Virus record (IMG/VR): IMGVR_UViG_3300030102_006934
Span: 62,001 to 126,000 of that record
DNA length: 64,000 bases
Direction: 5' to 3' (one strand)
The notes below the pieces were generated by a model, which worked only from the letters and a program-made list of their open reading frames with translations, did no database searches and was not told the DNA's origin. Of the stretch, positions 13,494-62,211 are shown piece after piece (the stretch's first letter is position 1; the number at the start of each line of letters is the position of its first letter). The position numbers and the translations under genes are program-made.

Positions 13494-14948
13494 ATGAGTA
13501 AATTAATTGATACTTTATTAACTAAAGATTCTCTAACAGAGAACGGTATGTCCACAAATTCTACAGCACTAAATTCATGCGTAGATTTATTTTTCAAAAT
13601 TGGTGCATTAAGAGGCGCTGAAAAAAACATAAAAATTAGTTCATTCACTAAAGCTTTTGGTGAAGACCCATTAACGGCCATGAAGATTCTTTTTTGGGCA
13701 AGAGACGTAAGGGGTGGTGCTGGAGAGCGAAAAACTTTTAGAGAGATATTAAGGTATTTAGTTAAAAACAAAACTGAAGTTGTTAAAAACAACATGGCTT
13801 TAATTCCTGAATACGGTAGATGGGACGACATGTTATATCTAATTGGAACTAAATTAGAGAAAGAAGCCCTAGGTGAAATCGCGTGTGCCTTAGAAGGTAA
13901 AAATGGTCTTTGCGCCAAGTGGATGCCTAGAGGCAACACTAAAAACAGGGAAAAGAAAAGATGGGCTTCGGTCATCAGAAAATATTTAGGATTAACTCCT
14001 AAATCTTACAGAAAATTATTATCTGAATTATCTAATACTGTTGAACAGTTAATGTGTTCTAAAAAATTCAAAGACATTAACTATTCTCACGTACCATCAA
14101 AGGCTATGTCTGATTATATGAGAGCTTTTGAAAGGAACGATAGTGAGGGTTTTAATAAATACTTAGATTCACTTAAAAATGGGGATACTAAAATTAACTC
14201 TGGGGCTATATACCCATATGATGTAACTAAGAACTTACAACATGGTTCTTCAGTAGGTGCAGTTGAGCAATGGAAATCATTACCAAACTATATGGAGGGT
14301 TCTAAAGAAAGAGTTTTACCAGTTGTTGATGTTTCTGGTTCTATGACTGTTCCAGCTGGTAATAACCCAAACCTATCTTGCTTAGATGTTTCGGTTTCTC
14401 TAGGTTTATATATTTCAGAAAGAAATGAAGGACCTTTTAAAGACGCCTTTTTTACTTTCTCAAATTCGCCACAGCTACAATATTTGAAGGGGGACCTTTC
14501 AGATAGGTTCACACAATTAAGTATGGCTGAATGGGGTGGGTCAACGAATATTGAAGCTACATTTAAAACTCTTTTAGATGTATCGGTAAATAACAATGTT
14601 AGTGCTGAAGAAATGCCTACAATGATATTAATACTCTCAGATATGGAATTCAATCAAGCCACCAGTATGGGTTGGAGCCAAGCTGAATCAGGCTGGAACC
14701 CAACGGTACAAGAAATGATTGAAAAAATGTATGATAATGCTGGTTACAAAATGCCAAAGATTGTATATTGGAACATTCAATCAAGACGGGACAATGTGCC
14801 AGTTAAATTTGATAAACAAGGTACCGCATTAGTTAGTGGGTTTAGCCCCGCATTACTAACCGCTTTATTATCTGGAAATGAAATCACACCATACAGTATT
14901 ATGAGTGATGTTATTAATTCAGAAAGATATGATAAAATAAAAATATAA
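13494..14948 (+). CDS. TROVE-like/vWA domain protein (DUF2828 family, Ro60-related)
   Basis: TENG, ARDVRGGAGER, YGRWDD, AKWMPR motifs; MIDAS DVSGS; ILSDMEF; YWN. Confidence 0.8.
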   Translation: MSKLIDTLLTKDSLTENGMSTNSTALNSCVDLFFKIGALRGAEKNIKISSFTKAFGEDPLTAMKILFWARDVRGGAGERKTFREILRYLVKNKTEVVKNNMALIPEYGRWDDMLYLIGTKLEKEALGEIACALEGKNGLCAKWMPRGNTKNREKKRWASVIRKYLGLTPKSYRKLLSELSNTVEQLMCSKKFKDINYSHVPSKAMSDYMRAFERNDSEGFNKYLDSLKNGDTKINSGAIYPYDVTKNLQHGSSVGAVEQWKSLPNYMEGSKERVLPVVDVSGSMTVPAGNNPNLSCLDVSVSLGLYISERNEGPFKDAFFTFSNSPQLQYLKGDLSDRFTQLSMAEWGGSTNIEATFKTLLDVSVNNNVSAEEMPTMILILSDMEFNQATSMGWSQAESGWNPTVQEMIEKMYDNAGYKMPKIVYWNIQSRRDNVPVKFDKQGTALVSGFSPALLTALLSGNEITPYSIMSDVINSERYDKIKI

Positions 14949-20618: not shown

Positions 20619-20990
20619 GGGGCAAAATGGTTATTGATTATTTATAGTCGTGATTAGTAAGCATGCAGTGTTAGATTGGAAACACTTTAATTACCTATCA
20701 TTTTTCTTAGATGGAAACGAGTTTGACATCGATGAAAACTTCCTAGATACCGCTTCAGTAGAAGTTGGTACGGGAGAGGTTGCATTCGCCTAAGAGTAAT
20801 GATGATGGTGGTAATCCACCAACCCTCTTTGATAGTAGAGTTTAAAAAATTATCCAGAAGATTAGTTATCAGTAAAACGAACTGTAATAAGGGAACTGTT
20901 AAACTTTGCTGGGATTAGAAACCAGATAAGCATGTAGAAAACTCTTTATGAGTAAGTAAGACTAGAGTTCGAATCTCTATTGCTCCACTA
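20619..20990 (+). ncRNA. ssrA: tmRNA; probable tag (A)GNEFDIDENFLDTASVEVGTGEVAFA
   Basis: Acceptor stem GGGGCAA/TTGCTCC-A with G3.U wobble; T-arm TAGAG-TTCGAAT-CTCTA; internal frame 20713-20793 ending AFA-stop; TATATTTG promoter at 20573; CCA not encoded. Confidence 0.88.
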
Positions 20991-24742: not shown

Positions 24743-24838
24743 AAAAAAATTGTTTTTTTAAAATATTTTTATTATGTTTGTTACCAATCAATCTTTAATG
24801 TAAATTCCTACACACATTAAAGTTCAAAAATAAATAAA

Positions 24839-27556: not shown

Positions 27557-27775
27557 ATGATTAAAGAAGAAAAACATACAATAGATTTAGAATATTTTAA
27601 AAAATATGTTGAAACTTATGATTATAGTGAATTTGAATATAATGAAACATTTATAAAAGATATGATTTATGGTATTGGTTTAGCCGTTAACGGTGATAAG
27701 TTCAAAATGGCTGATGGGTATAAAAGATTTGAAGATTTCTTATTAAATGAAATTATAAAACAAAAACAAAGATGA
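27557..27775 (+). CDS. cassette ORF, hypothetical (ends KQKQR in junction repeat)
   Basis: ORF ends in repeat TGA. Confidence 0.65.
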   Translation: MIKEEKHTIDLEYFKKYVETYDYSEFEYNETFIKDMIYGIGLAVNGDKFKMADGYKRFEDFLLNEIIKQKQR

Positions 27776-27924
27776 AAATATTTTTAAGTTTAATGATAAT
27801 GCTTTGTATGGGAATGACCTTATACCATTTCATCTCTCAACCAGAAGAGACAAACGAACTTATATTATGGTCAATGTTAACCCTATTTAATAGTCAATCT
27901 TTAATTAATATAAACCAAAACTGA
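27772..27924 (+). CDS. cassette ORF, 50 aa hydrophobic peptide
   Basis: MKIFLSLMIMLCMG...ININQN; runs repeat to repeat. Confidence 0.55.
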   Translation: MKIFLSLMIMLCMGMTLYHFISQPEETNELILWSMLTLFNSQSLININQN

Positions 27925-27925
27925 G

Positions 27926-28108
27926 ATGAGTAAAGAAAGAATAAAACAACTAACAGAAGAATATCCAGGTTGGATATCTTCTCTACTAGAAAGAGGTCTT
28001 ATGGAGCATCAGACAAGTTATGGTGACATGATACCTGTACCCAATGAAGTAGTAGTTTTTATTAAAGAATTTTATGAATACGAACAAAACAAAGATGAAG
28101 AAAACTGA
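27926..28108 (+). CDS. cassette ORF, hypothetical
   Basis: Starts at repeat ATG. Confidence 0.6.
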   Translation: MSKERIKQLTEEYPGWISSLLERGLMEHQTSYGDMIPVPNEVVVFIKEFYEYEQNKDEEN

Positions 28109-28397
28109 TTATAAACCACTAATTCCAATATGTTCAGATGAAGAACTAAAAGACATCGCAGAACAATGGTGTGATTTAGTTGGTACAGAACCTACTAACA
28201 CTACGTTAAACGCATTTATGATGGGAGCAAAAATAGCTATATCTAATATCGGTTGGGTAGTAAACCAAAACGAAGATGATATGAGAATTGAATGTTTAAT
28301 CGGTGAAACATATCAAGTTACTGATGGTTCTACTGTATGGCTTCAAGGTAGTTTATCAGATTGTGAGTCATACTTAAACCAAAAAAAAGATGAGTAA
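28095..28397 (+). CDS. cassette ORF, apparent fusion of two cassettes across a mutated repeat at 28261
   Basis: Starts at repeat ATG (MKKTDY); internal VNQNEDDM; ends LNQKKDE. Confidence 0.6.
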   Translation: MKKTDYKPLIPICSDEELKDIAEQWCDLVGTEPTNTTLNAFMMGAKIAISNIGWVVNQNEDDMRIECLIGETYQVTDGSTVWLQGSLSDCESYLNQKKDE

Positions 28398-28647
28398 AGA
28401 GATTAACATACAGGTAGAAACCATTGAGGTTAAGGGTGAGGTGATACCATTACAACATGAATGGAAAGTTTGTGAAAATAATAAAGAATGGTACGGTAGA
28501 TTACCCAGAAAGAAGAAGAAACAATTAAAGAAACGAATGGGTGAAGAATCTTTTGTTAGTTGGTGGAATGGACTTGATGTATATTATCATCCTGATATTG
28601 AAGAAGAATTAACAAAGTTACTTATAAATAAACCAAAACAAAGATGA
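28390..28647 (+). CDS. cassette ORF, hypothetical (RLPRKKKK motif; ends KPKQR)
   Basis: Repeat to repeat. Confidence 0.65.
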   Translation: MSKEINIQVETIEVKGEVIPLQHEWKVCENNKEWYGRLPRKKKKQLKKRMGEESFVSWWNGLDVYYHPDIEEELTKLLINKPKQR

Positions 28648-28702
28648 GTTATGAAACAAGAAAATAGAATAATTAGAATGATAATGGATTCCGATACTGT
28701 TT

Positions 28703-28712
28703 NNNNNNNNNN
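28703..28712. other. assembly gap (10 N)
   Basis: N run inside the cassette array. Confidence 1.
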
Positions 28713-28816
28713 AACTACTTTATTACATCTTTTAATAGAGACAGTAAGAAAGGTAAACGATATTTGGAACTACGTAGTGAATATGTTTTATAAACACAAT
28801 ATAAACCAAAACAAAA

Positions 28817-29113
28817 ATGACTAAACAATATAATGTAAAGTATGAAGTAGGACAAGATGTCTATGTATTAAGAGATAAAAAGATAAGTAAAAATAGGGTA
28901 TACAAGATTAGAGTTACCGAACAACAACCTTATACTAAGGGTAATTCAGATGGAACTCTTACTGAAATGTCGGGTATTGAAATAGATTATCTTATAGAAA
29001 CAAAAAGAGATTTCATACATCCACATACAAAAAGCACCCAAAGTTCATACGATTGGTACAATGAAGAAGATGTCTTTACTAATAAGGATGAATTGATTGC
29101 ACAAATTGTATAA
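28817..29113 (+). CDS. cassette ORF, SH3-like beta protein
   Basis: KYEVGQDVY...EEDVFTNKDEL; repeat to repeat. Confidence 0.65.
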   Translation: MTKQYNVKYEVGQDVYVLRDKKISKNRVYKIRVTEQQPYTKGNSDGTLTEMSGIEIDYLIETKRDFIHPHTKSTQSSYDWYNEEDVFTNKDELIAQIV

Positions 29114-29125
29114 ACCAAAACAAAG

Positions 29126-29254
29126 ATGAGAAGAATTGATATTGGATTAATACTTAAATTGGTTTTTCTTATTACCATTATATGGTTCTTGTTTTACATT
29201 GGAAAAGACAAAAATGTGAATTACAAAGGCAAAGGTTATTATGAAACTAGATAA
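29126..29254 (+). CDS. cassette ORF, 42 aa single-TM peptide
   Basis: MRRIDIGLILKLVFLITIIWFLFY...; repeat to repeat. Confidence 0.55.
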   Translation: MRRIDIGLILKLVFLITIIWFLFYIGKDKNVNYKGKGYYETR

Positions 29255-29266
29255 ACCAAAACAAAG

Positions 29267-29509
29267 ATGAGTAACAAAACAATAGCAATTATATACTTCA
29301 ATCAATATGATGGTAAGTATAATACTAAGTCTTATATGTATTTTGAAACTAAACTACATGCTGAAAGATACTTGATGGTAAACGGTTATCAGCCCGATGA
29401 TATTTTTGAATGGAAAAAGGATTACCTTTATTCAGCTAAAATCCATATGGAAACATTACATCTAGGTGATGGTGAGCATATTATTGATACTAAACAAAAA
29501 CAAAGATGA
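29267..29509 (+). CDS. cassette ORF, hypothetical (ends KQKQR)
   Basis: Repeat to repeat. Confidence 0.65.
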   Translation: MSNKTIAIIYFNQYDGKYNTKSYMYFETKLHAERYLMVNGYQPDDIFEWKKDYLYSAKIHMETLHLGDGEHIIDTKQKQR

Positions 29510-30003
29510 GTAAAAAGAAATTCATAGAAAGAAGACCAAATTATTTTTCAGGGTTTGAAGATAGTGAGTATGAGGTAGACAACTTCAATCAAGTTTTAGA
29601 AATACCCTTCGTAAAAAAGTTTTCAGAAGCCCCAAAATTTCATTCTTATGCGGTCTCTGTCAATATTAATGATGACTTACCTAGAGATGATGAGAATTAC
29701 TATAAGATGGAATTAATGGCTATGTATGATTGGGACGATGAATATAATGGTTGTAAACAATGGTGGGTAATAGGCCATCTTCCAGGATTTATTATGTATG
29801 AAACCAAATTAAAAGGATGGGAAGATATTAAAGCATCACACAAACCCAACTGTTGGAGTAGAAAATACAGCGGATGTAAAGACCTATTAGGTGTGGATAG
29901 AGATAAAGAAACCAAAATGAAAGTATTAAAGGAACTTGGTTGGGAACGAGATGATATGGTAGGTATTGTCGGTCATTGTGATTGTGGATGGAAAAATAAT
30001 TAA
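29506..30003 (+). CDS. cassette ORF, hypothetical with Cys/His motifs
   Basis: H..NC and CDCG; repeat to repeat. Confidence 0.65.
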   Translation: MSKKKFIERRPNYFSGFEDSEYEVDNFNQVLEIPFVKKFSEAPKFHSYAVSVNINDDLPRDDENYYKMELMAMYDWDDEYNGCKQWWVIGHLPGFIMYETKLKGWEDIKASHKPNCWSRKYSGCKDLLGVDRDKETKMKVLKELGWERDDMVGIVGHCDCGWKNN

Positions 30004-30015
30004 ACCAAAACAAAG

Positions 30016-30168
30016 ATGAGAGAAGTAAATTACAAATGGGTTCCTAAAAAGGGATGGGTGGTTGAATCTGAAGATGAAACACTAAAAATGGTGGTGGAAG
30101 AAACACTAAAAGAAGTTGATAGAACAATAAATTTTCAAGAATACTTAAACCAAAACAAAAATGAGTAA
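30016..30168 (+). CDS. cassette ORF, 50 aa (ends LNQNKNE)
   Basis: Read manually; repeat to repeat. Confidence 0.55.
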   Translation: MREVNYKWVPKKGWVVESEDETLKMVVEETLKEVDRTINFQEYLNQNKNE

Positions 30169-30331
30169 AGAAGAAAAAAGATTTGAGTTATGGGTTAATA
30201 AATTCAGAAATGAATTAGCAGAAGGTCAAATAGAAGTTTTACAAGATAGTTTATCTAATTTTGAATGGCCTGATGAATATAAAGAAATACTTCAGGATAG
30301 GATAAAGGAACTTAAACCAAAACAAAGATGA
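30161..30331 (+). CDS. cassette ORF, 56 aa (ends KPKQR)
   Basis: Read manually; repeat to repeat. Confidence 0.55.
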   Translation: MSKEEKRFELWVNKFRNELAEGQIEVLQDSLSNFEWPDEYKEILQDRIKELKPKQR

Positions 30332-30687
30332 GTAAGAAAAAGAAAGAAAATAAAAAGATTAGGGATAAGAATACTACGACTCTAAAAGAAATGGAAGAAA
30401 ATGGTATTGTCCCAGAGAACTTTCATTTATACGATAGTGTTGACATGAAAGAATATAATAACCAATTTGACGGTTATAAGGAATGGGAAGAAAAACAAAA
30501 CCGAAAAACAAAGATAAGTAAAAAAGAATTAGATAAAGCATACGATAAGATAGTAGAAGACCTAAGAGGTAATCTAACATCAGAAGAATATAAAGAACTA
30601 ATCACCCTTGAGCTTGCCCTAAGTCAAGGGTATGATGTTAATGGCGATGAAGAAAGATATAAAGAATTAAGTAATAAACGAAATTAA
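30328..30687 (+). CDS. cassette ORF, hypothetical
   Basis: Repeat to partial repeat. Confidence 0.65.
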   Translation: MSKKKKENKKIRDKNTTTLKEMEENGIVPENFHLYDSVDMKEYNNQFDGYKEWEEKQNRKTKISKKELDKAYDKIVEDLRGNLTSEEYKELITLELALSQGYDVNGDEERYKELSNKRN

Positions 30688-30754
30688 ACCAAAATAAATT
30701 TGGCCAACCAAAATAAAAGCTGTATGTTTATATTAACTATTTAAAACAGTAAAG

Positions 30755-31202: not shown

Positions 31203-31472
31203 GTGGAAAATCTTATTAGAAAAATCATAAGGGAAGAAATGGATGGCTTTGATTGGGCTAGAGATATAGCCAAACCATTTATTATTACTACAACTGATAC
31301 AAACAATAGATATTGGGTGTCTAAAGGAAGACCAATAAAGGTTGGAGATTTTGTTGTTTATAAAACCGCTTCAGGTATATGGAGAGAATATGGTATAATG
31401 AATCCAGAGAAAGTAGATGATGCTAATAATTATGAGGGTTATTATAGTGTTATAGATAAAATATTAGATTAA
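31203..31472 (+). CDS. leader + FDW single-module protein
   Basis: MENLIRKIIREEMDGFDWARD. Confidence 0.7.
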   Translation: MENLIRKIIREEMDGFDWARDIAKPFIITTTDTNNRYWVSKGRPIKVGDFVVYKTASGIWREYGIMNPEKVDDANNYEGYYSVIDKILD

Positions 31473-31923: not shown

Positions 31924-32310
31924 TATTTAAATCCCTTATAGAAATATAAGGTTTTTTTATGCCTTCTATAAGAAGAATAGAACGTCTCTCCGGACATATA
32001 AACCCATAGGGTATACAAGTATATATAAATTAATTTAAATGTCCTTATAACCCCCGAAAAACGCCTACCTTAATTTAACGTTTATGTGGATGTTGTGTCT
32101 GGGGGTAGTAAAGAAAAGCATTGCCTAAGTGTATTATTGTGGGAAAGAGTGGTAAAAGGTGGTCATTTTACGCTAACATTTTATTTAGGAGTCAGAGCTC
32201 TCCGTTTAGTCCTCTCAAAAAATCCTTAAAATTTGTTAAAAAATACCACTTTCAGAATTCACAGAGTTAATTTACCACTGTTAGAAAGCCGTACCATAAT
32301 TATACCACTG

Positions 32311-32769
32311 TTAGATGGGCCTCAAAGTATTTTTCAACCACTTCGAAGGCATCTTTTTAGGTGGGGGTTTTTTATAACCATACCTATCAAAATAATAGCC
32401 TTTAGGTGGACTCCTTCTGAGTGGGGGTTTTCTATAATCACCACTAGATTTAAAATTAGATGCCACCAGTTTAGGCCTAACCTCATCAAATTTAAATTCT
32501 TTAATTTTCATCTTAGGTTTAATATCACCAACAAGAACTATCTCCAATACTTTTGTGAACACCTCTACTGAGGGGTACTTATGATTTAAGGTATCATGAT
32601 ATCTAGATATAGTATATAAGTCTGCCTCTCTAAATTTTTCATTAAGAAAATGAAGTTTACGCCATGAGGGTCTATCGAATTTAATCTGAAGAGATTGATT
32701 ACTAGAACTAGACTCACCATAACATGTTACATGCCTAGCTATCTCAAGAAGTTTATGTCCTCTATACAT
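32311..32769 (-). CDS. hypothetical basic protein
   Basis: ORF in a minus-strand run. Confidence 0.5.
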   Translation of the reverse strand: MYRGHKLLEIARHVTCYGESSSSNQSLQIKFDRPSWRKLHFLNEKFREADLYTISRYHDTLNHKYPSVEVFTKVLEIVLVGDIKPKMKIKEFKFDEVRPKLVASNFKSSGDYRKPPLRRSPPKGYYFDRYGYKKPPPKKMPSKWLKNTLRPI

Positions 32770-32771
32770 AA

Positions 32772-33011
32772 TTAAACAAATTTAAAACTACCCTTATTAT
32801 ACTTTTTAACTAGACTAACAGTTGGTTCTTCACAAACCTCATCAATCATGTCCTTACAAATATCATCCAAAATCTGTTCATAATATTCATAATCATAATC
32901 ATCATTAGACCAAAACCTTTTGATTGCTCCGTATGATGAATTCAGTGCATTCGCTAATACATTACTTTGTAACGCCAACCTTAATCTTCTTTCTTCTGCC
33001 GTTTCCCCCAT
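32772..33011 (-). CDS. hypothetical protein
   Basis: ORF after TATATTTG. Confidence 0.55.
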   Translation of the reverse strand: MGETAEERRLRLALQSNVLANALNSSYGAIKRFWSNDDYDYEYYEQILDDICKDMIDEVCEEPTVSLVKKYNKGSFKFV

Positions 33012-37248: not shown

Positions 37249-37536
37249 ATGGATAATTTAGAACAAAGCAAAGATTGGTGTCATTATTCTGGTATGCCTT
37301 CGCCTAGTGCGTATGTTGAATCAGATAAAAGGTTAGAATTATATAATGTATGGAAGCATCGTGATGTAGAAGATGGTATTAGTTTTTATGGGTGGTTACG
37401 TGTAATACTATGCAATGCCTCTGTATGGTCAGAAGTTTCTGTTGAGGGCCAATTTCGTAGGTCTGATGCTCTAGATATAATGTTAGACCATGCCTCAGGT
37501 AAGATAAATTGTAATAGTCCTTATCCTTGGGAATAA
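37249..37536 (+). CDS. hypothetical protein
   Basis: WCHYSGMPSPSAY motif. Confidence 0.55.
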   Translation: MDNLEQSKDWCHYSGMPSPSAYVESDKRLELYNVWKHRDVEDGISFYGWLRVILCNASVWSEVSVEGQFRRSDALDIMLDHASGKINCNSPYPWE

Positions 37537-37623
37537 GTGTGGAAAAGAAAAAAATTGGCGGCTTAAGTCGAATCCCCCCTTACCCCCCTTTATTTTTTAA
37601 ATTATTATTATTATACTTTTTAT

Positions 37624-38159: not shown

Positions 38160-38251
38160 TATATGAACCGAGATTTGGCCTCGGCATAAGTTTGTAAATG
38201 TGGATAAGTAAAAAATTGGCGGCTAAACACAAACCCCCCTACCCCCCTTTT

Positions 38252-38440
38252 TTATTTTTGGTTCCACTTGTTAATGAATAGAGTGTTATATTTCTTTATC
38301 CATGATAATTTTTCCCCTCCGTATGTTGTATTGATTTTCTCTGTGATTTCTGCCTTTAGTTCAATATTCCTATTTAAAGTTTTTCTTATTTGTTCTAAGA
38401 ATATGCTTCTTGGTGTTAAATGATTTATTATCATATACAA
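38252..38440 (-). CDS. small hypothetical protein
   Basis: ORF. Confidence 0.4.
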   Translation of the reverse strand: MYMIINHLTPRSIFLEQIRKTLNRNIELKAEITEKINTTYGGEKLSWIKKYNTLFINKWNQK

Positions 38441-39704: not shown

Positions 39705-41360
39705 ATGTCTTATATTAACGTAAATAATATTTTTTCATATACAAACCCTTATGGTGGTGCTCCAGGGCCAAATCCTCCATTCCCAGGTAAAATTAAAATC
39801 CTTTACTCCCCATTACTCCATGGTTTCATGTGTGATGCTATACATGGTGGTTCTCACGCAGAAGGAGAAAGGTCTAAAGCTTATGGTAGTCCTTCTCACG
39901 CGGAAGGTTATAAAACTGAAGCTTTTGGTGCTTATTCTCATTCTGAGGGTTATGAAACACAAGCTCACGCTGAGGGTTCTCACGCTGAGGGTTATAGAAC
40001 CGAGGTTGTGAGTGGTACTTCCGTTACTGGACATTATGCTCATGCTGAAGGTGGTTACACCAATGCTCATGGGCAATATTCACACGCTGAAGGTAGTAGT
40101 ACAAATGCTATTGGTAATACCTCACATGCTGAAGGAAAACATACAACATCTACTGGTATTAACTCACACGCTGAGGGTTTATTTTCTGAATCTATTGGTA
40201 ATGCTTCGCACGCAGAAGGACAAGGTACAATTGCTAGTGGTGATTTTTCCCATTCAGAAGGTTTTTTCACCCAATCTAATGGGGAGGGTTCTCACGCTGA
40301 GGGTTATAGGACAACGGCGAATGGTGATTATTCTCATTCTCAGGGGTATTGGACTACTACAGACGCTAACTACCAAACCGTAGTGGGTAAATATAATTCT
40401 CCGAGTGGTACTCAAGGGGCTTTTATTGTCGGTAATGGTGTCGCTAATAACGTACTAAACAATTTATTGGTTGCTGCTGGTAACGAAGTAGAAGTATTTG
40501 GTAACACAAAAACTGAGACTATACAAGTAACGGATGGAGCGACAGCAGGATATGTATTAACTTCTGACGCTTCAGGTAATGGTACTTGGCAATCAGTCGC
40601 TGGATTAACAGACACATTTGTAACAGGAGCTTCTTTAGCTGGTACTGATTTAGAAATAAATAGAAATAATGGTGAACCACAAATAGTTGTTGATTTATCA
40701 CCACTTAGTGGTGTTGATATCTTTACAACAGGTGCTACATACGATAATGGGACATCAACTGCCACATTTAATAGAAATGATGGTAATTCATATACTTTAG
40801 ATTTGTCCACTATGGATGTTAATGACACATTTGTTACAAGTTCCTCTTTAAGTGGTACAACCTTATTAATAGATAGAAACCAAGGAGAACCACAAATTAG
40901 TGTAGATTTAAGTTCATTGGCAGACGACACTATTGTAAATGGTTTTACTTATTCAAATAATAACTTAACAATTAGTCAAAATGGTCAATCTGATTTAACA
41001 ACTAACATAAGTGTTATGACAGGGGTAACTGTTAATGGTGTCGCTGACTTTACTGATGAGATTTTAATTAATTCTACAACCTTATTTGGACAAACTACAT
41101 GGAACCCAGCGGGTGTAAGTAGAGCAACCCATAGAATAGATGGTATAGTCACACCAACATTAGCAGATGGTACTGATGGGCAGTTATTACACATCTTCGT
41201 AGCAGATGTTTTAAGTGTTGGTAGCTCAACTGTAACAGTTACTACTAGTTTAGGTTTCAATACGATAGCCTTTAACGCACTTGGTGATTCCGTGACTTTA
41301 ATGTTTAATCAACCTTTTGGTTGGACAATCGTTGGTAGTTATAATGTGGTAATTAGTTAA
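39705..41360 (+). CDS. tail fibre/adhesin with YadA-head-like SHAEG repeats
   Basis: About 12 SHAEG/SHSEG 14-aa repeats, FIVGNG, GYVLTSDASGNGTW, DTFVTG repeats. Confidence 0.75.
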   Translation: MSYINVNNIFSYTNPYGGAPGPNPPFPGKIKILYSPLLHGFMCDAIHGGSHAEGERSKAYGSPSHAEGYKTEAFGAYSHSEGYETQAHAEGSHAEGYRTEVVSGTSVTGHYAHAEGGYTNAHGQYSHAEGSSTNAIGNTSHAEGKHTTSTGINSHAEGLFSESIGNASHAEGQGTIASGDFSHSEGFFTQSNGEGSHAEGYRTTANGDYSHSQGYWTTTDANYQTVVGKYNSPSGTQGAFIVGNGVANNVLNNLLVAAGNEVEVFGNTKTETIQVTDGATAGYVLTSDASGNGTWQSVAGLTDTFVTGASLAGTDLEINRNNGEPQIVVDLSPLSGVDIFTTGATYDNGTSTATFNRNDGNSYTLDLSTMDVNDTFVTSSSLSGTTLLIDRNQGEPQISVDLSSLADDTIVNGFTYSNNNLTISQNGQSDLTTNISVMTGVTVNGVADFTDEILINSTTLFGQTTWNPAGVSRATHRIDGIVTPTLADGTDGQLLHIFVADVLSVGSSTVTVTTSLGFNTIAFNALGDSVTLMFNQPFGWTIVGSYNVVIS

Positions 41361-41379
41361 TATAAAAAAATAAAAAAAA

Positions 41380-44300
41380 ATGACAATAGGTAATATTAAT
41401 AATAAAGAAAGTGGGGCTTCGGTTAGGAATAAACTTAACCAGCTCATAAATGAGGTTAATACGTTAGCTTCTCAAATAAGTTCGGGTGATACCAATACTT
41501 TTGTTACTGGTGCGACTTTGGTTAGTACTATTTTAGATATTGAAAGAAACGATGGTGTAGATATTAGTGTAGACCTATCTTCAATTAATAGTAATGTTTT
41601 TGTTGATAGTGGTAATGCGAACCCTATTACACAACAACTAACTTTTACAAACACTAGTGGTGGTACTTTTAATGTTACCAACGCTGCAGCCCTATTTAGT
41701 GGTAACGATGTGAATGTTACGGGTGGAACATATAACCCAACCAATGGTTGTGTTACATTTAGTACAAATAGTGCATCAACTTTCGATGTCTGTGGATTTT
41801 TAACTGGGCTAACTGATACTTTTATTAGTGGGACCACATTAGTGGGGACAAGTTTTACTTTAAATAGAACAGATGGTGTTAATTTAACAACTGATTTTAG
41901 TAGTATTGTTGATGACAAATTAGATATAACCACTTTTGATTCTTATACCGCTAATACCACTGATAATGTGGTGACTGGAGCAACTTTAGTAGGAACGACT
42001 TTAGAATTAGAAAGAAATAATGGATTATCTGATGTAACAGTAGATTTAAGTCCCCTGAGTGGTTCAAGTGTAGACACTTTTGTTACAGGTAGTACTCTAA
42101 TAGGTACATCCTTTACTTTAAAAAGAAATGATGGGGTAGACATAACAACCGACTTGAATCCCATAGTAAATAATAAATTAGATATAACCACCTTTGATTC
42201 TTATACCGCAAACACTACAGATAATGTGGTGACTGGAGCAACTTTAGTTGGACCTATATTAGAATTAGAAAGAAATAATGGATTATCTGATGTAACAGTA
42301 GATTTAAGTTCATTAACTGGGTCGGTAGATACAAATACGTTTGTCACAGGTAGTACTCTAGTGGGTACAACTTTGAATTTGGAAAGGAACGATGGTGTTA
42401 CTGTTAGTGTTAATTTAAACTCACTGACTGGTTCTACTGATACAAATACTTTTGTAACAGGGACAACATTAAATGGTAATGATTTGATAATTGAGAGGAA
42501 TGATGGTGTTGAAATAACCACTAATTTAAACCCTATTTTAAGTGGTAAGTTAGATACCACCTTATTTAATTCTTATACCGCTAATACCACTGATAATGTG
42601 GTGACTGGAGCAACTTTAGTAGGAACGACTTTAGAGTTAGGGAGAAATAATGGATTAAGTGATGTAACCGTAGATTTAAGTTCCATAGATAATAATGTTT
42701 TCGTTAATAGTGGTAAAGCAAATGCTGCGACTCAAAGATTATCATTTACCAACACAACTGGGGGTACTTTTACCGTCACAGATTCAGCAGCACTATTTAG
42801 TGATAACGATGTAAACGTAACTGGCGGAACATATAACCCAACCAATGGTTGTGTTACATTTAACACAAATAGTGGAACTACTTTTGATGTTTGTGGTTTT
42901 GTAACTGGATTGACTGATACATTTATCACAGGTACCACTTTAGTTGGTACAAATTTTACTTTAAATAGAACAGATGGTGTTAATTTAACGACAGACTTTA
43001 ACCCTATCCTTAGTGGTAAATTAGATATAACCACTTTTGATTCTTATACCGCAAACACTACAGATAATTTTGTTACAGGTGCTACCTTAGTGGGTAGTAC
43101 TTATACTATAAAAAGAAATGATGGGGTAAATATATCTACTAATTTAAACCCTATTTTAAGTGGTACGGTGGATACCACATTATTTAATTCTTATACCGCT
43201 AATACACAAACTGAAATTAATAATAAGTTAAACATCACCACTTTTGATTCTTATACCGCAAACACTACAGATAATGTAGTGACTGGAGCGACTTTAGTGG
43301 ACACATCATTAGGGTTAGAAAGAAATAATGGATTATCTGATGTAACAGTAGATTTATCACCATTAAGTGATATAAATACTGGTAATATTTTATGGGTAGA
43401 CTCAATTTTTGGTGACGACTCAACTGCGGTTACTAATAGACAAGACAAACCTTATTTAACCATAGAACAGGCGTTAAGTGCTTCAACAGTTGGGGATACA
43501 TTAGTTGTAAGACCAGGTATCTATGATGAGGAAGGATTAGTTGTCTCAAAAGGAGTTTCTTTAGTTAGTGAAGGTGGTTGGGAAGTAACTACTATTGGTA
43601 AATCTTCCGCAACTGCATCTAGAGATATATTGGAATTAAATGAAAATTCATTTATAGATGGATTTAGTGTAAATGTACCAGAAGGAAACTTTAATGGTAT
43701 AATAGCTTCAAATAGTGGTGGAACATCTACCGCAAATAATATTACATTCTACGGTAATGGAGGAACAGGAAGTACTGGTACTGGTTTATTTAAAACAGGT
43801 GGTGGTAAATTAATCGGTTTCTCAATTAGAGTAGAAGGTGGTGGTATGGGTAACTGCTTGAAGGTTGATTCGGGTACTTTAGCATTAGAGGGTGTACATG
43901 TACCACAATCAAATGGTGAGATTAAAAATGTATTATTGGTAACTACTTCGGGTGGTACTAACGCGGGTATAGCACAAATGGTAGGGTTTAATTCTGGAAA
44001 CAGTAATGTATCTAACGCTATTAGAACCCAAGGTGGTAGTTCGGGTGTTATACCAGTGGTCAAAATATTTACACCTAACATATTTGGTTCGACTAACGCA
44101 TTAAGTGCCTCGGGAGATTATGAAGATATTAATTTATTGGGGGGTTCACTAGAGAATGTAACTTATTCAGTAAAAGTGGATTTAACTGGTACTGGTGTAG
44201 GTGCCTCTTATAGAATAACCTCTAACCACCAACCAAATTATATTTACCCACCAGCAGTAGCCTATACAGCAGACTTTGGTTTAGATTTTACACAAGAATC

Positions 44301-46339: not shown

Positions 46340-47809
46340 ATGAGTATCAAAAAATACATAAAAGAAGAGATGGATAGTTTTGACTGGATTAAGGACGTAA
46401 AAACTAATGATACTATCGCTAAAGAAATTTATGATACTCTAAAATGGCATAAGGTTCCCAATGTAACAACAGATTTTGTGAAAGTACCGTGGGTTGACAT
46501 TGTTTTTGCGGTAAGAAAAAGAAACTTAAGTGACTCCAAAATACCTTTAATCACCCCAAGTACATTTTACAAAGGTTTTACAAAATACGTAAAAGAATAT
46601 TACAATATTTTTGATCCTCAAACTGGTGTGTTAGAAATTTACAATAAAGTTAGGGCATTAATGGGGGATAAAATTCATGGAACTATTACTGAGTCTAATG
46701 ACTTTGGTTGGACAAATAGTTCTAAACTCATATACCCTCAAGACTTAGTCGGTTATTATTTTACTTACACTGAAAAAGAATATACAATAACTAAGGTGGA
46801 TGAAATGTATTTAAGTGATGATCCAGAAGATGAAAAACTCACCGTTTATTATAAGTATCGAGCTTATGAGGGGTTACGTAAAAACAAAATGGATGTGGAT
46901 ACTTTGATTTATAGAATCAAAGGTGGTGACTACGGTCTATATGACTTGGAGGGTAATCCTGTTAATCCAGATGATTTGGTATATAGTGATGGTAAGTTGG
47001 AAGATGTTGATTCTGTTAATGAAAATTCTGATTTTGATTGGGTGAGTGATGTTACCCCTTATATTGATAAGGTTACTGACCTACAAATTGGTGAGTATTA
47101 TGAAATAAAGGACATAGACACAAAACTTTTCACCATGTTGGTTGATTGTGGGTGGCACTATGAGTCTGAATTAATTAGAGATTTATATGATAAAGGTGAA
47201 ATACTTACCGTTAAAATTAGTGAAACGGTACCAAACGCTATATTAAATTACTATGTTTATTGTGATGGGCGTACAACATCATGGAAACCTAATAATACCG
47301 TTTCAAAGAGGGGTCCTGTAGCGGGAATAGAACTTTATAGTGAAATGGATACCTCACATCACCCAAGACATGATTGGATACCTTTCCACTCTTTTTATAT
47401 TACAGATGGTATGATAACATTTTACAGAGATAATAAGGATTTGAATGAGTCCGCAGAATTTGGTTGGATAGAAGATGTAAAACCAAATGTGTTGAAGGCT
47501 TTGGCTGATGCGAGTACGGGTGATGAGAGAATTAATTTTATTTATAGTGATGAAAATAAATATTTCACCTCCATTGAGGATGAAAAAGGTTTTAACTACT
47601 TTACTAGAGTATCTCTTATTTCATACTTAAGAAAAGTTAGGCAGGATTGGGATACCATGCCTGAGGTAATACTTAATAGTATGACCGTTGATGAGATGTT
47701 GGGTTTTATAGAAAAATTTTTAAAAGATAACTTCCCTGACCAACAACCAGTTGCTATATATGAGGACTATTTATATTTATATGAATTTATTAAACGTGGA
47801 TTAAAATAA
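46340..47809 (+). CDS. leader + four-module FDW polyprotein
   Basis: IKEEMDSFDWIKD; ITESNDFGW; VNENSDFDWVSD; LNESAEFGWIED. Confidence 0.8.
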   Translation: MSIKKYIKEEMDSFDWIKDVKTNDTIAKEIYDTLKWHKVPNVTTDFVKVPWVDIVFAVRKRNLSDSKIPLITPSTFYKGFTKYVKEYYNIFDPQTGVLEIYNKVRALMGDKIHGTITESNDFGWTNSSKLIYPQDLVGYYFTYTEKEYTITKVDEMYLSDDPEDEKLTVYYKYRAYEGLRKNKMDVDTLIYRIKGGDYGLYDLEGNPVNPDDLVYSDGKLEDVDSVNENSDFDWVSDVTPYIDKVTDLQIGEYYEIKDIDTKLFTMLVDCGWHYESELIRDLYDKGEILTVKISETVPNAILNYYVYCDGRTTSWKPNNTVSKRGPVAGIELYSEMDTSHHPRHDWIPFHSFYITDGMITFYRDNKDLNESAEFGWIEDVKPNVLKALADASTGDERINFIYSDENKYFTSIEDEKGFNYFTRVSLISYLRKVRQDWDTMPEVILNSMTVDEMLGFIEKFLKDNFPDQQPVAIYEDYLYLYEFIKRGLK

Positions 47810-47810
47810 A

Positions 47811-50800
47811 ATGGGGGATAAAAAGGAAGAATTTAATTGGGTTAATGATATCTCAAGTGATTACTGGGACTACCATAACGTTTTAGTGTTTAATGATGCC
47901 ATTAGTTATGAAGAGTTCGATGATTTAATCTCTCACGCTTTATATTCCAAGTCACCTAAAAATTCACACCAATGGGGAGACGATGGGAAAAAAGAGGCTT
48001 GGAATTATTTAACCCACCTTGTAAAAAGTTATAGTGTGGGTTATCTTATTTGGGATAAACCATATTTATCCGTTTCAGCTCAACACAAGCTGAAACAAGG
48101 AGACCCAAAATTAGTAAATTATAAGGATATAGTTAATCAAAAACCAAAGTTAGATGAGTCTGATGAATTTAGTTGGGTTAGAGATGAGGTTGATAGTCCG
48201 ATTAGGTTTAGTGTAGGTGATAAAATAAGGGTTATTAATGTGGGTGATGTACAAACTTTCATCGATTTTTTGGGTACTGCTGGTGTATATTATCGTAAAG
48301 GTCTACTTGGAACTAATATTGAGGGTGAGATTATAGATGGTGGTAATGAATATTTATTCCCCTTAAGGGAGAAAAATAGGGGTAAAATAATTTTTTTACC
48401 ATGGTTAGACATGGTAGATTATTGGGCTGACTCCTACCCTGATTTGGATGTTAGGTATGAATTTATAGATGATGACTTAAACGAATCTAGTGATTTAGAT
48501 TGGATTAGAGATGTTGAACCGCCTAATTTAGATTTTAGTTTTGATGGTAAGGAACATTGGGTTGACGTTTCACAAATAGATAGAGAAGGTAGGAAAAAAA
48601 TTGTAAATTATATTAAAAAAACTGTTCCAAATTACGAAGAATTTGAAAGTGATCTGTTCGGTCATATATCTAGAGGTAATTATAAAGGAATTATTATTCA
48701 TTGTGGTTCTGATAGGACCTATTATGAACCTGAAGAAGGTTTATTATGTAGTGCAAATAGTAGTTACGAAGATGATTATAAAATAGACAACCCATACTCA
48801 GATATGCTAAAATCTGTTTATCTTGATGGCCAAGAAATATTAGATTATATTACTGTGACTGATGATGTTGATGAAGAATTAGATGAATCTTTGGAGTGGT
48901 CAGACAAGGACGCACCTTTTGATGAAAAAGATAAAAGTTTTGAATCAGACCCTAGTTGGAAGAATGATGAAGATTGGTCATTAAACCCCGAAAGGTCTTA
49001 TTGGAAACAAGGGGATACTGGGGGTTCTGGTGGTGGTGACGTGAATGAGTCCAATGAGTTAGAATGGATTTATGATATAAGACCCACATTAAAAGACGTT
49101 TTTGATGAAAATTTGATTGGGGTTGGGGATATTTTAACACTTTATGGGACATTGGAAGATGAAAATGGTTTGGAAGAACAACAGGTAGATGATTTTAAAG
49201 TAAAGATAGAGACTGTCTCAAATTCAGAAAGACCTCGATTAGTCTCTACTTACTTCAAACCATTACAAAAAAAATATTGGGGTTTCTTGGGTTATGATGG
49301 TACGGGAGATATAAGGTTCACTAAAAAAGATGGTAACTTACAGTTGGTGGATAGAATTAGTGGTAAAGGTTTGGTAGAAGGGTCTAATGACTGGGATTGG
49401 GTGGAAGATATACCAGGAACAAAAGAATTTGACCAAAAATATAGATATTTTGAAATTTTGGCTTGTTATGGTGTTGATTATGAATCTGAAGAGTGTGATG
49501 ATGAATATTCACATTATGTTAGAATACCCAAATATGAGGCTGATGAAATATGGGACCATTCGGTTGATTATTTCGCTGGAATTGCTGATGGTGATTCTTA
49601 TGATGTTATTATGTACGCAATACAAAATAGACTAATATCACACTTTGAAATCAACGAAATTGTTATGTTTGAGGGTGTTAGAGAGTTGGATAAAAATACT
49701 TATGATAAACTAACAGATTATAGAGATGACTTGCTTACAAATGAATCATATTTTATCAATGAAAAAAGTGATGACTTTGACTGGGTTAAGGATATAAAAC
49801 CCAATTGGGGTACTTATTATGGTGGTATAATAATGAAGGACATTGAGGGTCTACCTAAAAAATTAGAAGATGTAACAAGTGAAATGTTACTACCTATTTG
49901 GATGAAAATAGAAACTATTAATAGACAAATATTAACTAGAAAAAACAGAGATGATAAACATGGTGTGAGTGAGACGTTAATTGATTCTATGGATCAAATC
50001 GAGTGGCTGTTTGGTAGAATAATGGCTTTGGTTGATGGTGAAACCGATAGTTTAGTATCTTCCAGAATGGAACCACAGGAGTATTACAATTCAAGAAAAC
50101 TAACTATAATTAGTTACATAAAAGGCATGGCTCAACAATTAGAACTACTCGGTGAATCTAATGACTTTGGTTGGGTAGAAGATGTAACACCAAGGATGGA
50201 CGCTACCCTATTAAAACCTGGACAAAAATTCTATGACAAATGGGGTGGCGTTATAAGAGTGTTAGAGTACTTGGGTAGGGATGATTCTGAAGGTGAAGTT
50301 TGTTATGAACCCCCTTGTAGTTTATTAAGATTTAGGAAAATAAAAGACCCAAGTGGTTACATACCAATTCCTGGATTACCAGCTGATGACCCACAAAACA
50401 CAGATATGGTAATGAACCCAAACGATTTCGATAGTTACATTGAATCTGGTAAATTAAAGTTAGTTAGTAAACGTACAATGTATGAATCAAAAGATTTTGA
50501 TTGGGTTAGGGATGTTGAAACCGATAGAACTGACTCTAAGTATTATATAATAGATAGAAGAAGTTTCTCTGGGGTTCCTGAAAAACAAAAAGATGAGTGG
50601 TTTATGATAGAAATATTAGAAAATGACAAGTATGGCATTCATTGGAGACCTTACGCATGGAATTTGGTGAATGTTCATACTTGGAATCCAACCCATCGAG
50701 TTGGAAAAATGTCAAACGATGAATTTAAAAATTTATTAGGTTTAGGTTCAAAGGATAAACCTTACTGGTACCCTCATGATGGGGATTTGACTGACCTACC

Positions 50801-61851: not shown

Positions 61852-62211
61852 GTGATGAGTAGAATGAATAAAAAAATAAACAAAGAACCTTTACTATCTG
61901 AGAAAAAAATAGATAAAATTATAAAGAAGTATCTATTAGAGAGGGAAGAAGTAAATGATGACTATAGTGAAGAGTTAGAAGATTTTAGTGAAGATACTAA
62001 AGAAGTTTTTAGTGGTATGATAGAAGGTTTGGGAGAAGTTTTGGTAGATTTAGACTTTATAAAAAATAAAGAAGGTGATGTAAAAATCTATAAAAAATAT
62101 AATAAACATCTATATGCCGATAATCATTTAAATACTTTAATTAACAAATTAGAAGATGTTATCAATGAATTAAGTTTCTTAGTAGAGGGTGAAGATACTG
62201 AAGATGTTTAA
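61852..62211 (+). CDS. acidic hypothetical protein with IDKIIKKYLLE motif
   Basis: ORF. Confidence 0.55.
   Translation: MMSRMNKKINKEPLLSEKKIDKIIKKYLLEREEVNDDYSEELEDFSEDTKEVFSGMIEGLGEVLVDLDFIKNKEGDVKIYKKYNKHLYADNHLNTLINKLEDVINELSFLVEGEDTEDV

Follow-up and report, generated by a model that had tools for sequence, protein, structure and literature searches.

A repeated stop-start junction element in small-gene arrays of uncultivated phages, where genes are also exchanged

How can a short repeat close one gene in any reading frame and open the next one, and why should a phage place it at one gene junction after another? This question is raised by an array of small open reading frames (ORFs) in the 64,000-nucleotide window analysed here, which covers positions 62,001 to 126,000 of the IMG/VR record IMGVR_UViG_3300030102_006934. 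The array (27557-30687, + strand) consists of 13 co-oriented cassette ORFs of 42-165 aa, whose junctions hold copies of the 23-nt element TAAACCAAAACAAAGATGAGTAA. In this motif, a TAA is found at positions 1-3, an ATG at 16-18, a TGA at 17-19, and a second TAA at 21-23. The first TAA is in frame with the ATG, so that this ATG is the first possible start of the downstream ORF. The original prediction described this anatomy, listed the ORFs that use each stop, and proposed that the element is a frame-agnostic expression socket for captured or newly born genes, the next cassette being translationally coupled. The observation has been confirmed, and the element is distributed much more widely than had been seen.

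The 23-mer occurs in 10 copies with at most three mismatches, while none was expected in 100 shuffles. Its 16-mer core is present in 14 copies on the + strand between 27759 and 30702, against 2.6 chance matches expected in the whole window. These 14 elements, all on the + strand, lie only between 27757 and 30707, and the element is absent from the other 61 kb of the window. As predicted, the ORFs ending at 29113, 29254, 30003, and 30687 stop at the first TAA, those ending at 27775, 28647, 29509, and 30331 end in K[PQ]KQR followed by the TGA, and those ending at 28397 and 30168 end in LNQxKxE followed by the last TAA. The MSK or MSN start of many cassettes follows from the sequence ATG AGT AAx.

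The first copy (27757-27779) is degenerate, but its TGA (27773-27775) ends ORF 27557-27775 and its ATG (27772) starts the next cassette. The three following copies were not included in the original list. The copy at 27911-27933 has two mismatches, and a TGA created inside this variant (27922-27924) ends ORF 27772-27924, while the ATG at 27926 starts the next cassette. The degenerate copy at 28080-28102 has lost stop 3, so that the upstream ORF runs two codons further to the TGA at 28106-28108, and the ATG at 28095 is the likely start of the next cassette. The degenerate copy at 28261-28283 has lost its stop and is located inside ORF 28095-28397, which is therefore a fusion of two cassettes. 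In fact, in protein family 5, the homologue of the first half in locus L054 ends in KPKQR at an intact element. The copy at 28375-28397 uses stop 3 (28395-28397) and starts the next cassette at 28390. The copy at 28629-28651 uses stop 2 (28645-28647), but its stop 3 is mutated (GAGTTA) and the downstream ORF starts at the next ATG, 28651. In the copy at 28802-28824, the ATG at 28817 starts cassette 28817-29113. Stop 1 is used in the copies at 29111-29133 (ATG at 29126), 29252-29274 (an exact copy, ATG at 29267), and 30001-30023 (ATG at 30016). Stop 2 is used in those at 29491-29513 (ATG at 29506) and 30313-30335 (an exact copy, ATG at 30328), and stop 3 in that at 30146-30168 (ATG at 30161). 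Finally, a decayed terminal copy without an ATG (30685-30707) provides the TAA that ends the last cassette, 30328-30687, and marks the end of the array.

The window is interrupted by an assembly gap of 10 N (28703-28712). A paralogous array at the end of the same contig (L020) and another contig (L074) match both flanks at 98-100% identity and hold 80 nt at this place, at positions 10784-10863 in L020. Hence, the two sides are one + strand ORF of about 70 aa, running from 28651 through the gap to the TAA at 28791-28793, and ending 8 nt before the element at 28802. The 57-aa ORF 28651-28824, which an ORF-calling program reads through the N run, is out of frame and is an artefact. None of the ORFs of the original list depends on the gap.

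The element is not private to this genome. Its exact 20-mer core was found in at least 120 stretches from at least 116 IMG/VR contigs, of which 87 contain two or more copies and one contains 27. All 457 copies are co-oriented within their locus, with a median spacing of 204 nt. In contrast, only nine stretches, mostly phage-like MAG contigs, were found in 185,579 species genomes, and a 35-nt query around one element gave only chance-level partial matches in 50,697 deposited phage records; no cultured phage carries the element. DNA searches with the array and with 25 kb of the window returned no match among deposited phage genomes, and literature searches for the sequence and for descriptive terms revealed nothing relevant.

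All three stops are also used in other contigs. Among 440 copies, the upstream ORF ends at stop 1, 2, or 3 in 75, 93, and 119 cases, respectively (287 in total). Stops occur in all three frames within the 23 nt in 64% of copies, against 14% at ordinary gene starts of the same contigs. However, the statistics on stops 1 and 2 are partly circular for the 181 seed copies, and in the 259 non-seed copies all three stops coexist in only 32%. Stop-preserving variants (TAA to TGA or TAG) are frequent, accounting for 68 of about 132 single-step variants, although coding constraints on the downstream second and third codons confound any reading of this figure as selection on the unused stops.

It could be argued that the repeat has no special function, being left over from tandem duplication of one ancestral gene with its leader or simply what any AT-rich leader looks like, since A-rich leaders and ATGA overlaps are common and three-frame stops also occur near some ordinary starts. 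This possibility is contradicted by several results and seems remote. The 487 element-started ORFs fall into 314 unrelated families, of which 215 are singletons. The flanks outside positions -15 to +7 (relative to the start codon) show no conservation, and the mismatch distribution of positions -15 to -1 against the consensus is bimodal, with a peak at 0-1, a valley at 3, and a background peak at 9. Moreover, the exact 20-mer recurs in the contigs mentioned above.

The cassettes are real genes, as they evolve under purifying selection in the frame of the element's ATG: the pooled pN/pS is 0.26 over 45 pairs, and 96% of pairs are below 1. No cassette of the window received an assignment in Pfam and PHROG scans, and at most two show weak PHROG matches. 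In other contigs, the element also heads thymidylate synthase, UvdE, a PD-(D/E)XK nuclease, and a phosphatase. Host-like genes such as thymidylate synthase and UvdE carry MSK or MSN heads behind the element, while thymidylate synthase copies without the element start differently. Whether the tails belong to the genes or to the element had been set beforehand as a possible refutation. Members of one family were found to end in LN, KTKQR, or NQNKDE depending on the element frame, which indicates that the KPKQR and NQNKDE tails are element-encoded appendages, and the original prediction thus passed this test.

Regarding translation, only 4 of 64 ORFs of the window and 8% of 758 ORFs in the loci exhibit a Shine-Dalgarno-like tetramer, whereas A is enriched at -14 to -11 and at -3. 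This pattern matches the determinants reported for Flavobacterium johnsoniae (Baez et al. 2019, PMC6847099). The element has adenines at -2 to -4, -6 to -9, and -12 to -14, which include every position (-3, -6, -12, and -13) that promotes initiation on Bacteroidia ribosomes, and it is predicted to be less structured than its surroundings, with an unpaired probability of 0.69 against 0.48 for its flanks. Nevertheless, the leaders of these hosts represent a statistical preference and not a fixed sequence, the exact element is essentially absent from bacterial genomes, and it carries conserved cytosines that the host rule does not require. That the hosts are Bacteroidota is probable but inferred from leader composition and from two Bacteroidota MAG hits.

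The distances from stop to start (+12, -4, and -8 nt) fall within the short range in which termination-reinitiation is reported to be possible, coupling being almost lost at about 20 nt (Huber et al. 2019, PMC6728339; 2023, PMC10666635). The ATGA overlap (-4 nt) is the classical coupled arrangement. However, known cases are individual gene pairs in one frame relationship, whereas here a single repeated module offers all three, and coupling is inferred from this spacing alone.

Neither a sigma-70 nor a Bacteroidota (TTG...TAnnTTTG) promoter consensus was detected in the element, and no promoter or terminator consensus was found on the + strand inside the array, which is thus probably one polycistronic unit. 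The nearest upstream + strand match to the Bacteroidota consensus (24743-24780, with TTG at 24750 and TAtgTTTG at 24773) is a candidate promoter for the transcript that includes the array, based only on this pattern match. The reverse complement of the element resembles a Bacteroidota -7 box. A promoter for a phage RNA polymerase, giving one short or leaderless transcript per cassette, has also been considered, because the length and sharp boundaries of the element resemble those of single-subunit RNA polymerase promoters (a T7-type promoter has 23 bp) and one copy precedes each small gene, as with the promoters of T4 PeSLs. However, the same sequence is shared by contigs of 23-44% GC with different neighbouring genes, while phage RNA polymerase promoters diverge even between close relatives. 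Furthermore, the ATG has a fixed place inside the element, with the preceding TAA in frame with it. This explanation is therefore considered very unlikely.

The element is also the preferred breakpoint for cassette exchange, a role that the original prediction had missed and that explains how the arrays are built at least as well as the expression argument does. Of the inter-contig HSPs that reach an element junction, 81% break there, against 23-29% at non-element gene starts, although HSPs are not independent observations. In L057, another of the loci compared, a cassette is replaced between two elements while the flanks remain identical. In L020, cassettes E and H are adjacent, whereas the window has E-F-G-H. 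Similarly, the window order is A B C D E F G H I J K, while L057 presents G. F. I D. E, at 92-98% protein identity.

This behaviour resembles that of integrons, in which co-oriented, unrelated, promoterless cassettes are separated by a repeated site and their order is reshuffled between relatives, and it could point to a dedicated site-specific recombination system. However, the imperfect inverted repeats of attC sites are missing, as no recurrent inverted repeat was found at the junctions. No integrase or other recombinase was detected in ORFs within about 8 kb of the array, and none is shared among the commonest neighbour families of the 120 loci, where only a Sak4-like AAA_24 protein was found, in eight loci. 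The site is, moreover, only 23 nt long and is itself the stop, leader, and start of the flanking genes, overlapping coding sequence on both sides. From these surroundings of the arrays, a dedicated system therefore also appears very unlikely.

The closest parallel is provided by the PeSLs (promoter-early stem-loops), mobile regulatory cassettes of T4-type phages (Arbiol et al. 2010, PMC2839356; Comeau et al. 2014, PMC4122927). Both are short conserved motifs repeated between small ORFan genes in variable regions, both include the upstream stop and the downstream start, and both are preferred sites of insertion, deletion, and replacement between related phages. Nevertheless, PeSLs are longer composites of a sigma-70 promoter, a stem-loop terminator, and a Shine-Dalgarno sequence that act on transcription. 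The element has no promoter, no stem-loop, and no Shine-Dalgarno sequence, would act (if at all) on translation, carries stops in all three frames, and is shared in sequence across many dissimilar phage contigs. Conserved boundary or linker sequences have also been proposed for module exchange in lambdoid phages, in the modular theory of Susskind and Botstein, where short sequences shared at gene boundaries are used as crossover points. Those sequences are sporadic and lineage-specific, and are not a single consensus that doubles as a translation signal.

According to these data, the element is best understood, with moderate confidence, as a compact and portable junction module used by uncultivated phages whose genes lack Shine-Dalgarno sequences. 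On the mRNA, it would close the upstream ORF in whichever frame it arrives (TAA at 1-3, TGA at 17-19, or TAA, TGA, or TAG at 21-23), offer an unstructured A/C-only leader, and supply the ATG and usually the AGT AAx codons of the next ORF, at distances short enough for a terminating ribosome to restart. On the DNA, the same roughly 20 bp stand at every junction of the arrays in many related and unrelated phages, and would therefore serve as a patch of homology at which cassettes are inserted, deleted, replaced, and reordered, any crossover inside it leaving both neighbours with an intact stop and an intact start. The anatomy, the use of all three stops, the discreteness and wide distribution of the element, the coding status of the cassettes, and the concentration of breakpoints and reshuffling at the element have been demonstrated by the analysis. 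In contrast, that ribosomes restart or initiate there, that homologous recombination and not a dedicated enzyme makes the exchanges, and that the three-frame stop property is itself selected are inferred from sequence alone. In addition, 23 bp is short for efficient homologous recombination unless a phage annealase is involved. The interpretation offered by the original prediction is thus supported only in part, since the stops, the tails, the coding status, the leader, and the host-like genes behind the element agree with it, while translational coupling and the birth of new genes in the arrays remain hypothetical.

The conservation of the three cytosines (-11, -10, and -5) and the G at -1, well beyond what a generic A-rich leader needs and far above background, hints at sequence-specific recognition by an unidentified factor. 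One possibility is that the element is mainly an operator or processing site on the mRNA, recognised by a phage-encoded RNA-binding protein or nuclease and defining a regulon of early genes, like the T4 RegA or RegB targets, with stops and breakpoints as by-products. The restriction of the element to arrays of small genes and its absence from host genomes would fit this view. However, no candidate cognate protein was found in the 64 kb of the 380-kb contig and the short stretches of the other contigs examined, neighbouring conserved genes differ from contig to contig (none is present in more than 12 of 120 loci), no complementary sequence exists in the window, and cassette reshuffling is not explained by this reading alone, so that this alternative is regarded as unlikely. 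A bolder proposal, also doubtful but not excluded, is that the factor is either a translational regulator or an annealase/recombinase. The arrays would then be a phage-borne gene-capture and expression system, a "translational integron", operating across many lineages of Bacteroidota phages and supplying them with a shared pool of small host-takeover or anti-defence genes.

The arrays appear to be places where metagenome assemblies break. The element bears on the open question of how internal cistrons of long operons are translated in bacteria that do not use Shine-Dalgarno pairing, as a natural, ultra-conserved 23-nt junction placed by phages before hundreds of different genes is a ready-made test object and a candidate portable expression part for Bacteroidota. 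It also gives a concrete, countable marker for the variable small-gene arrays of uncultivated phages and suggests a mechanism by which these arrays exchange genes without breaking their neighbours, extending the PeSL idea from transcription signals in T4-like phages to a translation signal in a different, inferred host phylum.

The 23-nt motif is real, with 10 copies carrying at most 3 mismatches, against none in 100 shuffles. Its 16-nt core has 14 + strand copies that are confined to 27757-30707, with nothing comparable in the other 61 kb, and every copy sits at the junction of two small + strand ORFs. The original prediction, which held that the element carries a stop codon in each of the three frames together with an ATG, and that all three stops are actually used, is confirmed as an observation. 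Its list of ORF ends is correct, as four ORFs stop at the TAA in positions 1-3, four end K[PQ]KQR-TGA at positions 17-19, and two end LNQxKxE-TAA at positions 21-23, while the MSK/MSN starts correspond to ATG AGT AAx. In addition, the TAA at positions 1-3, a point that the prediction did not state, is in frame with the ATG, and the element therefore also guarantees that its ATG is the first start codon of the downstream ORF. Three junctions show what happens when a copy decays. The ORF ending at 27924 stops at a TGA created inside a variant copy, and the ORF ending at 28108 runs two codons past a copy that lost stop 3. The copy at 28261 lost its stop altogether, so that 28095-28397 is a fusion of two cassettes, the first half of which has stand-alone homologues in other contigs that end ...KPKQR at an intact element.

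Other repeats were found elsewhere in the window. A repeated coding motif (IRKIIREE...DFDWVRD) at 31215, 31537, 46346 and 51584 heads several otherwise different proteins (the N-termini of ORFs 31203, 31531, 46340 and 51578), including large ones next to the endolysin-like gene, and it also recurs inside the 1254-aa and 901-aa ORFs, with internal copies at 47441-50513 and 55765-56231. Long tandem coding repeats, with units of 42, 62 and about 251 nt, occupy 39837-43373 in the 551-aa and 1585-aa ORFs, which are probably fibre or adhesin-like proteins. A pair of 65-nt direct repeats (37534-37598 and 38195-38259), each with two C-runs followed by a T-run, lies in a region with little long coding sequence. 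The stretch 32000-32800 shows reversed GC skew, overlapping ORFs on both strands and no family match, and an Rfam search found nothing there.

The array includes an assembly gap. The window corresponds to bases 62001-126000 of a 380,343-bp IMG/VR contig, and this same contig ends inside a second cassette array (L020, contig positions 367749-380343) that holds paralogues of window cassettes. Both L020 and another contig, L074, match the two flanks of the gap at 98-100% identity and carry 80 nt where the window has 10 N. With 80 nt, the two sides form one 70-aa ORF, running from 28651 through the gap to 28793, which ends 8 nt before the element at 28802. The 57-aa ORF 28651-28824 that is obtained by a mechanical reading through the N run is out of frame and should be ignored, although no part of the original argument rested on it. 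By visual inspection, 41 of 76 element-bearing stretches in contigs over 20 kb touch a contig end, and the gap in the window is also inside the array. Assemblies seem to break in these arrays.

The element is not private to this genome. The exact 20-mer core occurs in at least 120 stretches from at least 116 IMG/VR contigs of 4-380 kb and 23-44% GC. Within the fetched stretches, 87 contigs have at least two copies, 36 have at least five and one has 27, and all 457 copies are co-oriented within their locus, with a median spacing of 204 nt. By contrast, 596 Gb of bacterial and archaeal genomes hold the 20-mer in only 9 stretches, several of which are obviously phage-like arrays in MAG bins, while two are in Bacteroidota MAGs. 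A search of 50,697 deposited phage records gave only chance-level partial matches, and the sequence was not found in the searchable literature. Conservation falls to background immediately outside positions -15 to +7 relative to the ATG, and the mismatch count of upstream regions against the consensus is bimodal. It is therefore a discrete element, and not a composition trend.

With respect to the use of the stops, in 440 copies the upstream ORF ends at position 1, 17 or 21 in 75, 93 and 119 cases, respectively. A stop is present in all three frames within the 23 nt in 64% of copies, against 14% at ordinary gene starts of the same contigs. Ascertainment needs care here, because the seed 20-mer contains stops 1 and 2. 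In the 259 non-seed copies, stops 1, 2 and 3 are present in 61%, 92% and 53%, and all three coexist in 32%. Positions 21-23, which the seed does not cover, read TAA 213 times, TGA 43 times and TAG 25 times. Selection on the unused stops themselves could not be shown cleanly from these data, and these bases are also the second and third codons of the downstream gene.

The element is independent of what it flanks. The 487 ORFs that start at an element fall into 314 families, of which 215 are singletons, and their median length is about 65 aa. Searches of the window's cassettes against Pfam returned no family, and at most two have weak PHROG matches. Elsewhere, the element also heads thymidylate synthase, UvdE, a PD-(D/E)XK nuclease and a metallophosphatase, each with an MSK or MSN head, whereas thymidylate synthase genes in other loci lack the element and start MNN, MND or MEK. 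Members of one protein family end in different element frames. One family shows ...TPYLN*, ...TPYSFIKTKQR* and a read-through ...FFNQNKDEYN, and another one shows ...SIKPKQR* and ...SIKQKKDE*. In the same way, a database search with the 85-aa cassette 28390-28647 shows a conserved core followed by variable tails, which may be KPKQR, NQNKDEQ, EKENKDE, none, or a fused domain. Whether homologues outside arrays carry the same tails had been set beforehand as a condition that could refute the idea, and the idea passes it, as the tails are translated element and not part of the proteins.

The cassettes are genes. Forty-five pairs of homologous cassettes were compared with the first three and last eight codons trimmed, and the pooled pN/pS is 0.26, with 96% of pairs below 1. 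The frame set by the ATG of the element is therefore under purifying selection.

The translation context was also analyzed. Only 4 of 64 long ORFs in the window, and 8% of 758 in the loci, have a Shine-Dalgarno-like tetramer, and adenine is enriched at -14 to -11 and at -3. This is the signature described for Flavobacterium johnsoniae, where A at -3, -6, -12 and -13 raises initiation and structure lowers it (PMC6847099). The element has A at all these positions, and its predicted unpaired probability is 0.69, against 0.48 for the flanks. No host-type promoter or terminator consensus lies inside the array, and the nearest good + strand Bacteroidota-type match is located at 24743-24780. The cassettes are therefore probably cistrons of one long mRNA, and each would need its own way to load ribosomes. 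On the minus strand of the element copies (for instance, at window positions 30516 and 28620), the reverse complement (cATCTTTG) is one base away from the Bacteroidota -7 promoter box TAnnTTTG. The three stop-to-start distances (+12, -4 and -8 nt) are within the short range in which termination-reinitiation has been measured, coupling being almost lost by about 20 nt (PMC10666635). That ribosomes actually restart at the element is an inference, and so is the Bacteroidota host, for which weak support is provided by a Band-7 protein from the window, whose nearest atlas cluster is mostly in Bacteroidota. The phage-like contig also contains a full-length tmRNA gene (20619-20990, + strand), for which ARAGORN predicts the tag peptide GNEFDIDENFLDTASVEVGTGEVAFA and Rfam RF00023 scores 59.7 bits.

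Between different contigs, 31% of homology breakpoints lie within 20 nt of an element, against 3% for random positions. Of HSPs with at least 80% identity that reach an element junction, 81% stop there, while the figure is 29% at non-element ORF starts and 23% at non-element starts of ORFs of 100 codons or more. The window and L057, another element-bearing contig, are identical up to one element, unrelated for one cassette, and identical again from the next element. L020 has cassettes E and H adjacent, whereas the window has E-F-G-H, and this two-cassette difference is bounded by elements. Moreover, the window order is A B C D E F G H I J K, while L057 carries G, F, I, D and E in that order, interspersed with other cassettes, at 92-98% protein identity. 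The element is thus the crossover point for cassette exchange, and because it contains the stop(s), the leader and the start, any crossover inside it would leave both neighbours intact. Ordinary or annealase-assisted homologous recombination is inferred, as the junctions have no inverted-repeat structure, no recombinase was found near the array, and no recombinase family is shared across the loci examined, apart from a Sak4-like AAA_24 protein in 8 of them. Domain searches of the window also identified a 484-aa protein (13494-14948, + strand) that carries DUF2828 and DUF7788 domains, whose family (phrog_850) is labelled in PHROGs as RNA-binding protein.

The nearest described system is the PeSL of T4-type phages. 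PeSLs are conserved motifs between ORFans that include the upstream stop and the downstream start and that mediate modular shuffling (PMC2839356; PMC4122927). The element described here works like a PeSL at the DNA level but is not one, since it lacks the promoter and the stem-loop that define PeSLs, is about a third to half the size, and belongs to an inferred host group without Shine-Dalgarno recognition. It resembles integron arrays in layout only. Its leader fits the Bacteroidia rule but is far more exact than that rule requires, which leaves open a sequence-specific partner. This possibility represents the main rival explanation, and it is also the basis for considering the system as something more novel.

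According to these data, the interpretation of the element as a frame-agnostic socket that terminates any inserted DNA and couples the translation of the next cassette is supported only in part, and it has been extended. The use of the three stops, the discreteness and wide distribution of the element, the coding status of the cassettes and the concentration of breakpoints at the junctions rest directly on the analysis, while translational restart, the host and the recombination mechanism have been inferred from sequence and by comparison with other systems. The element, which has not been described in the literature that could be searched, is rated as a junction and recombination cassette akin to PeSLs, but one that would operate at the level of translation.
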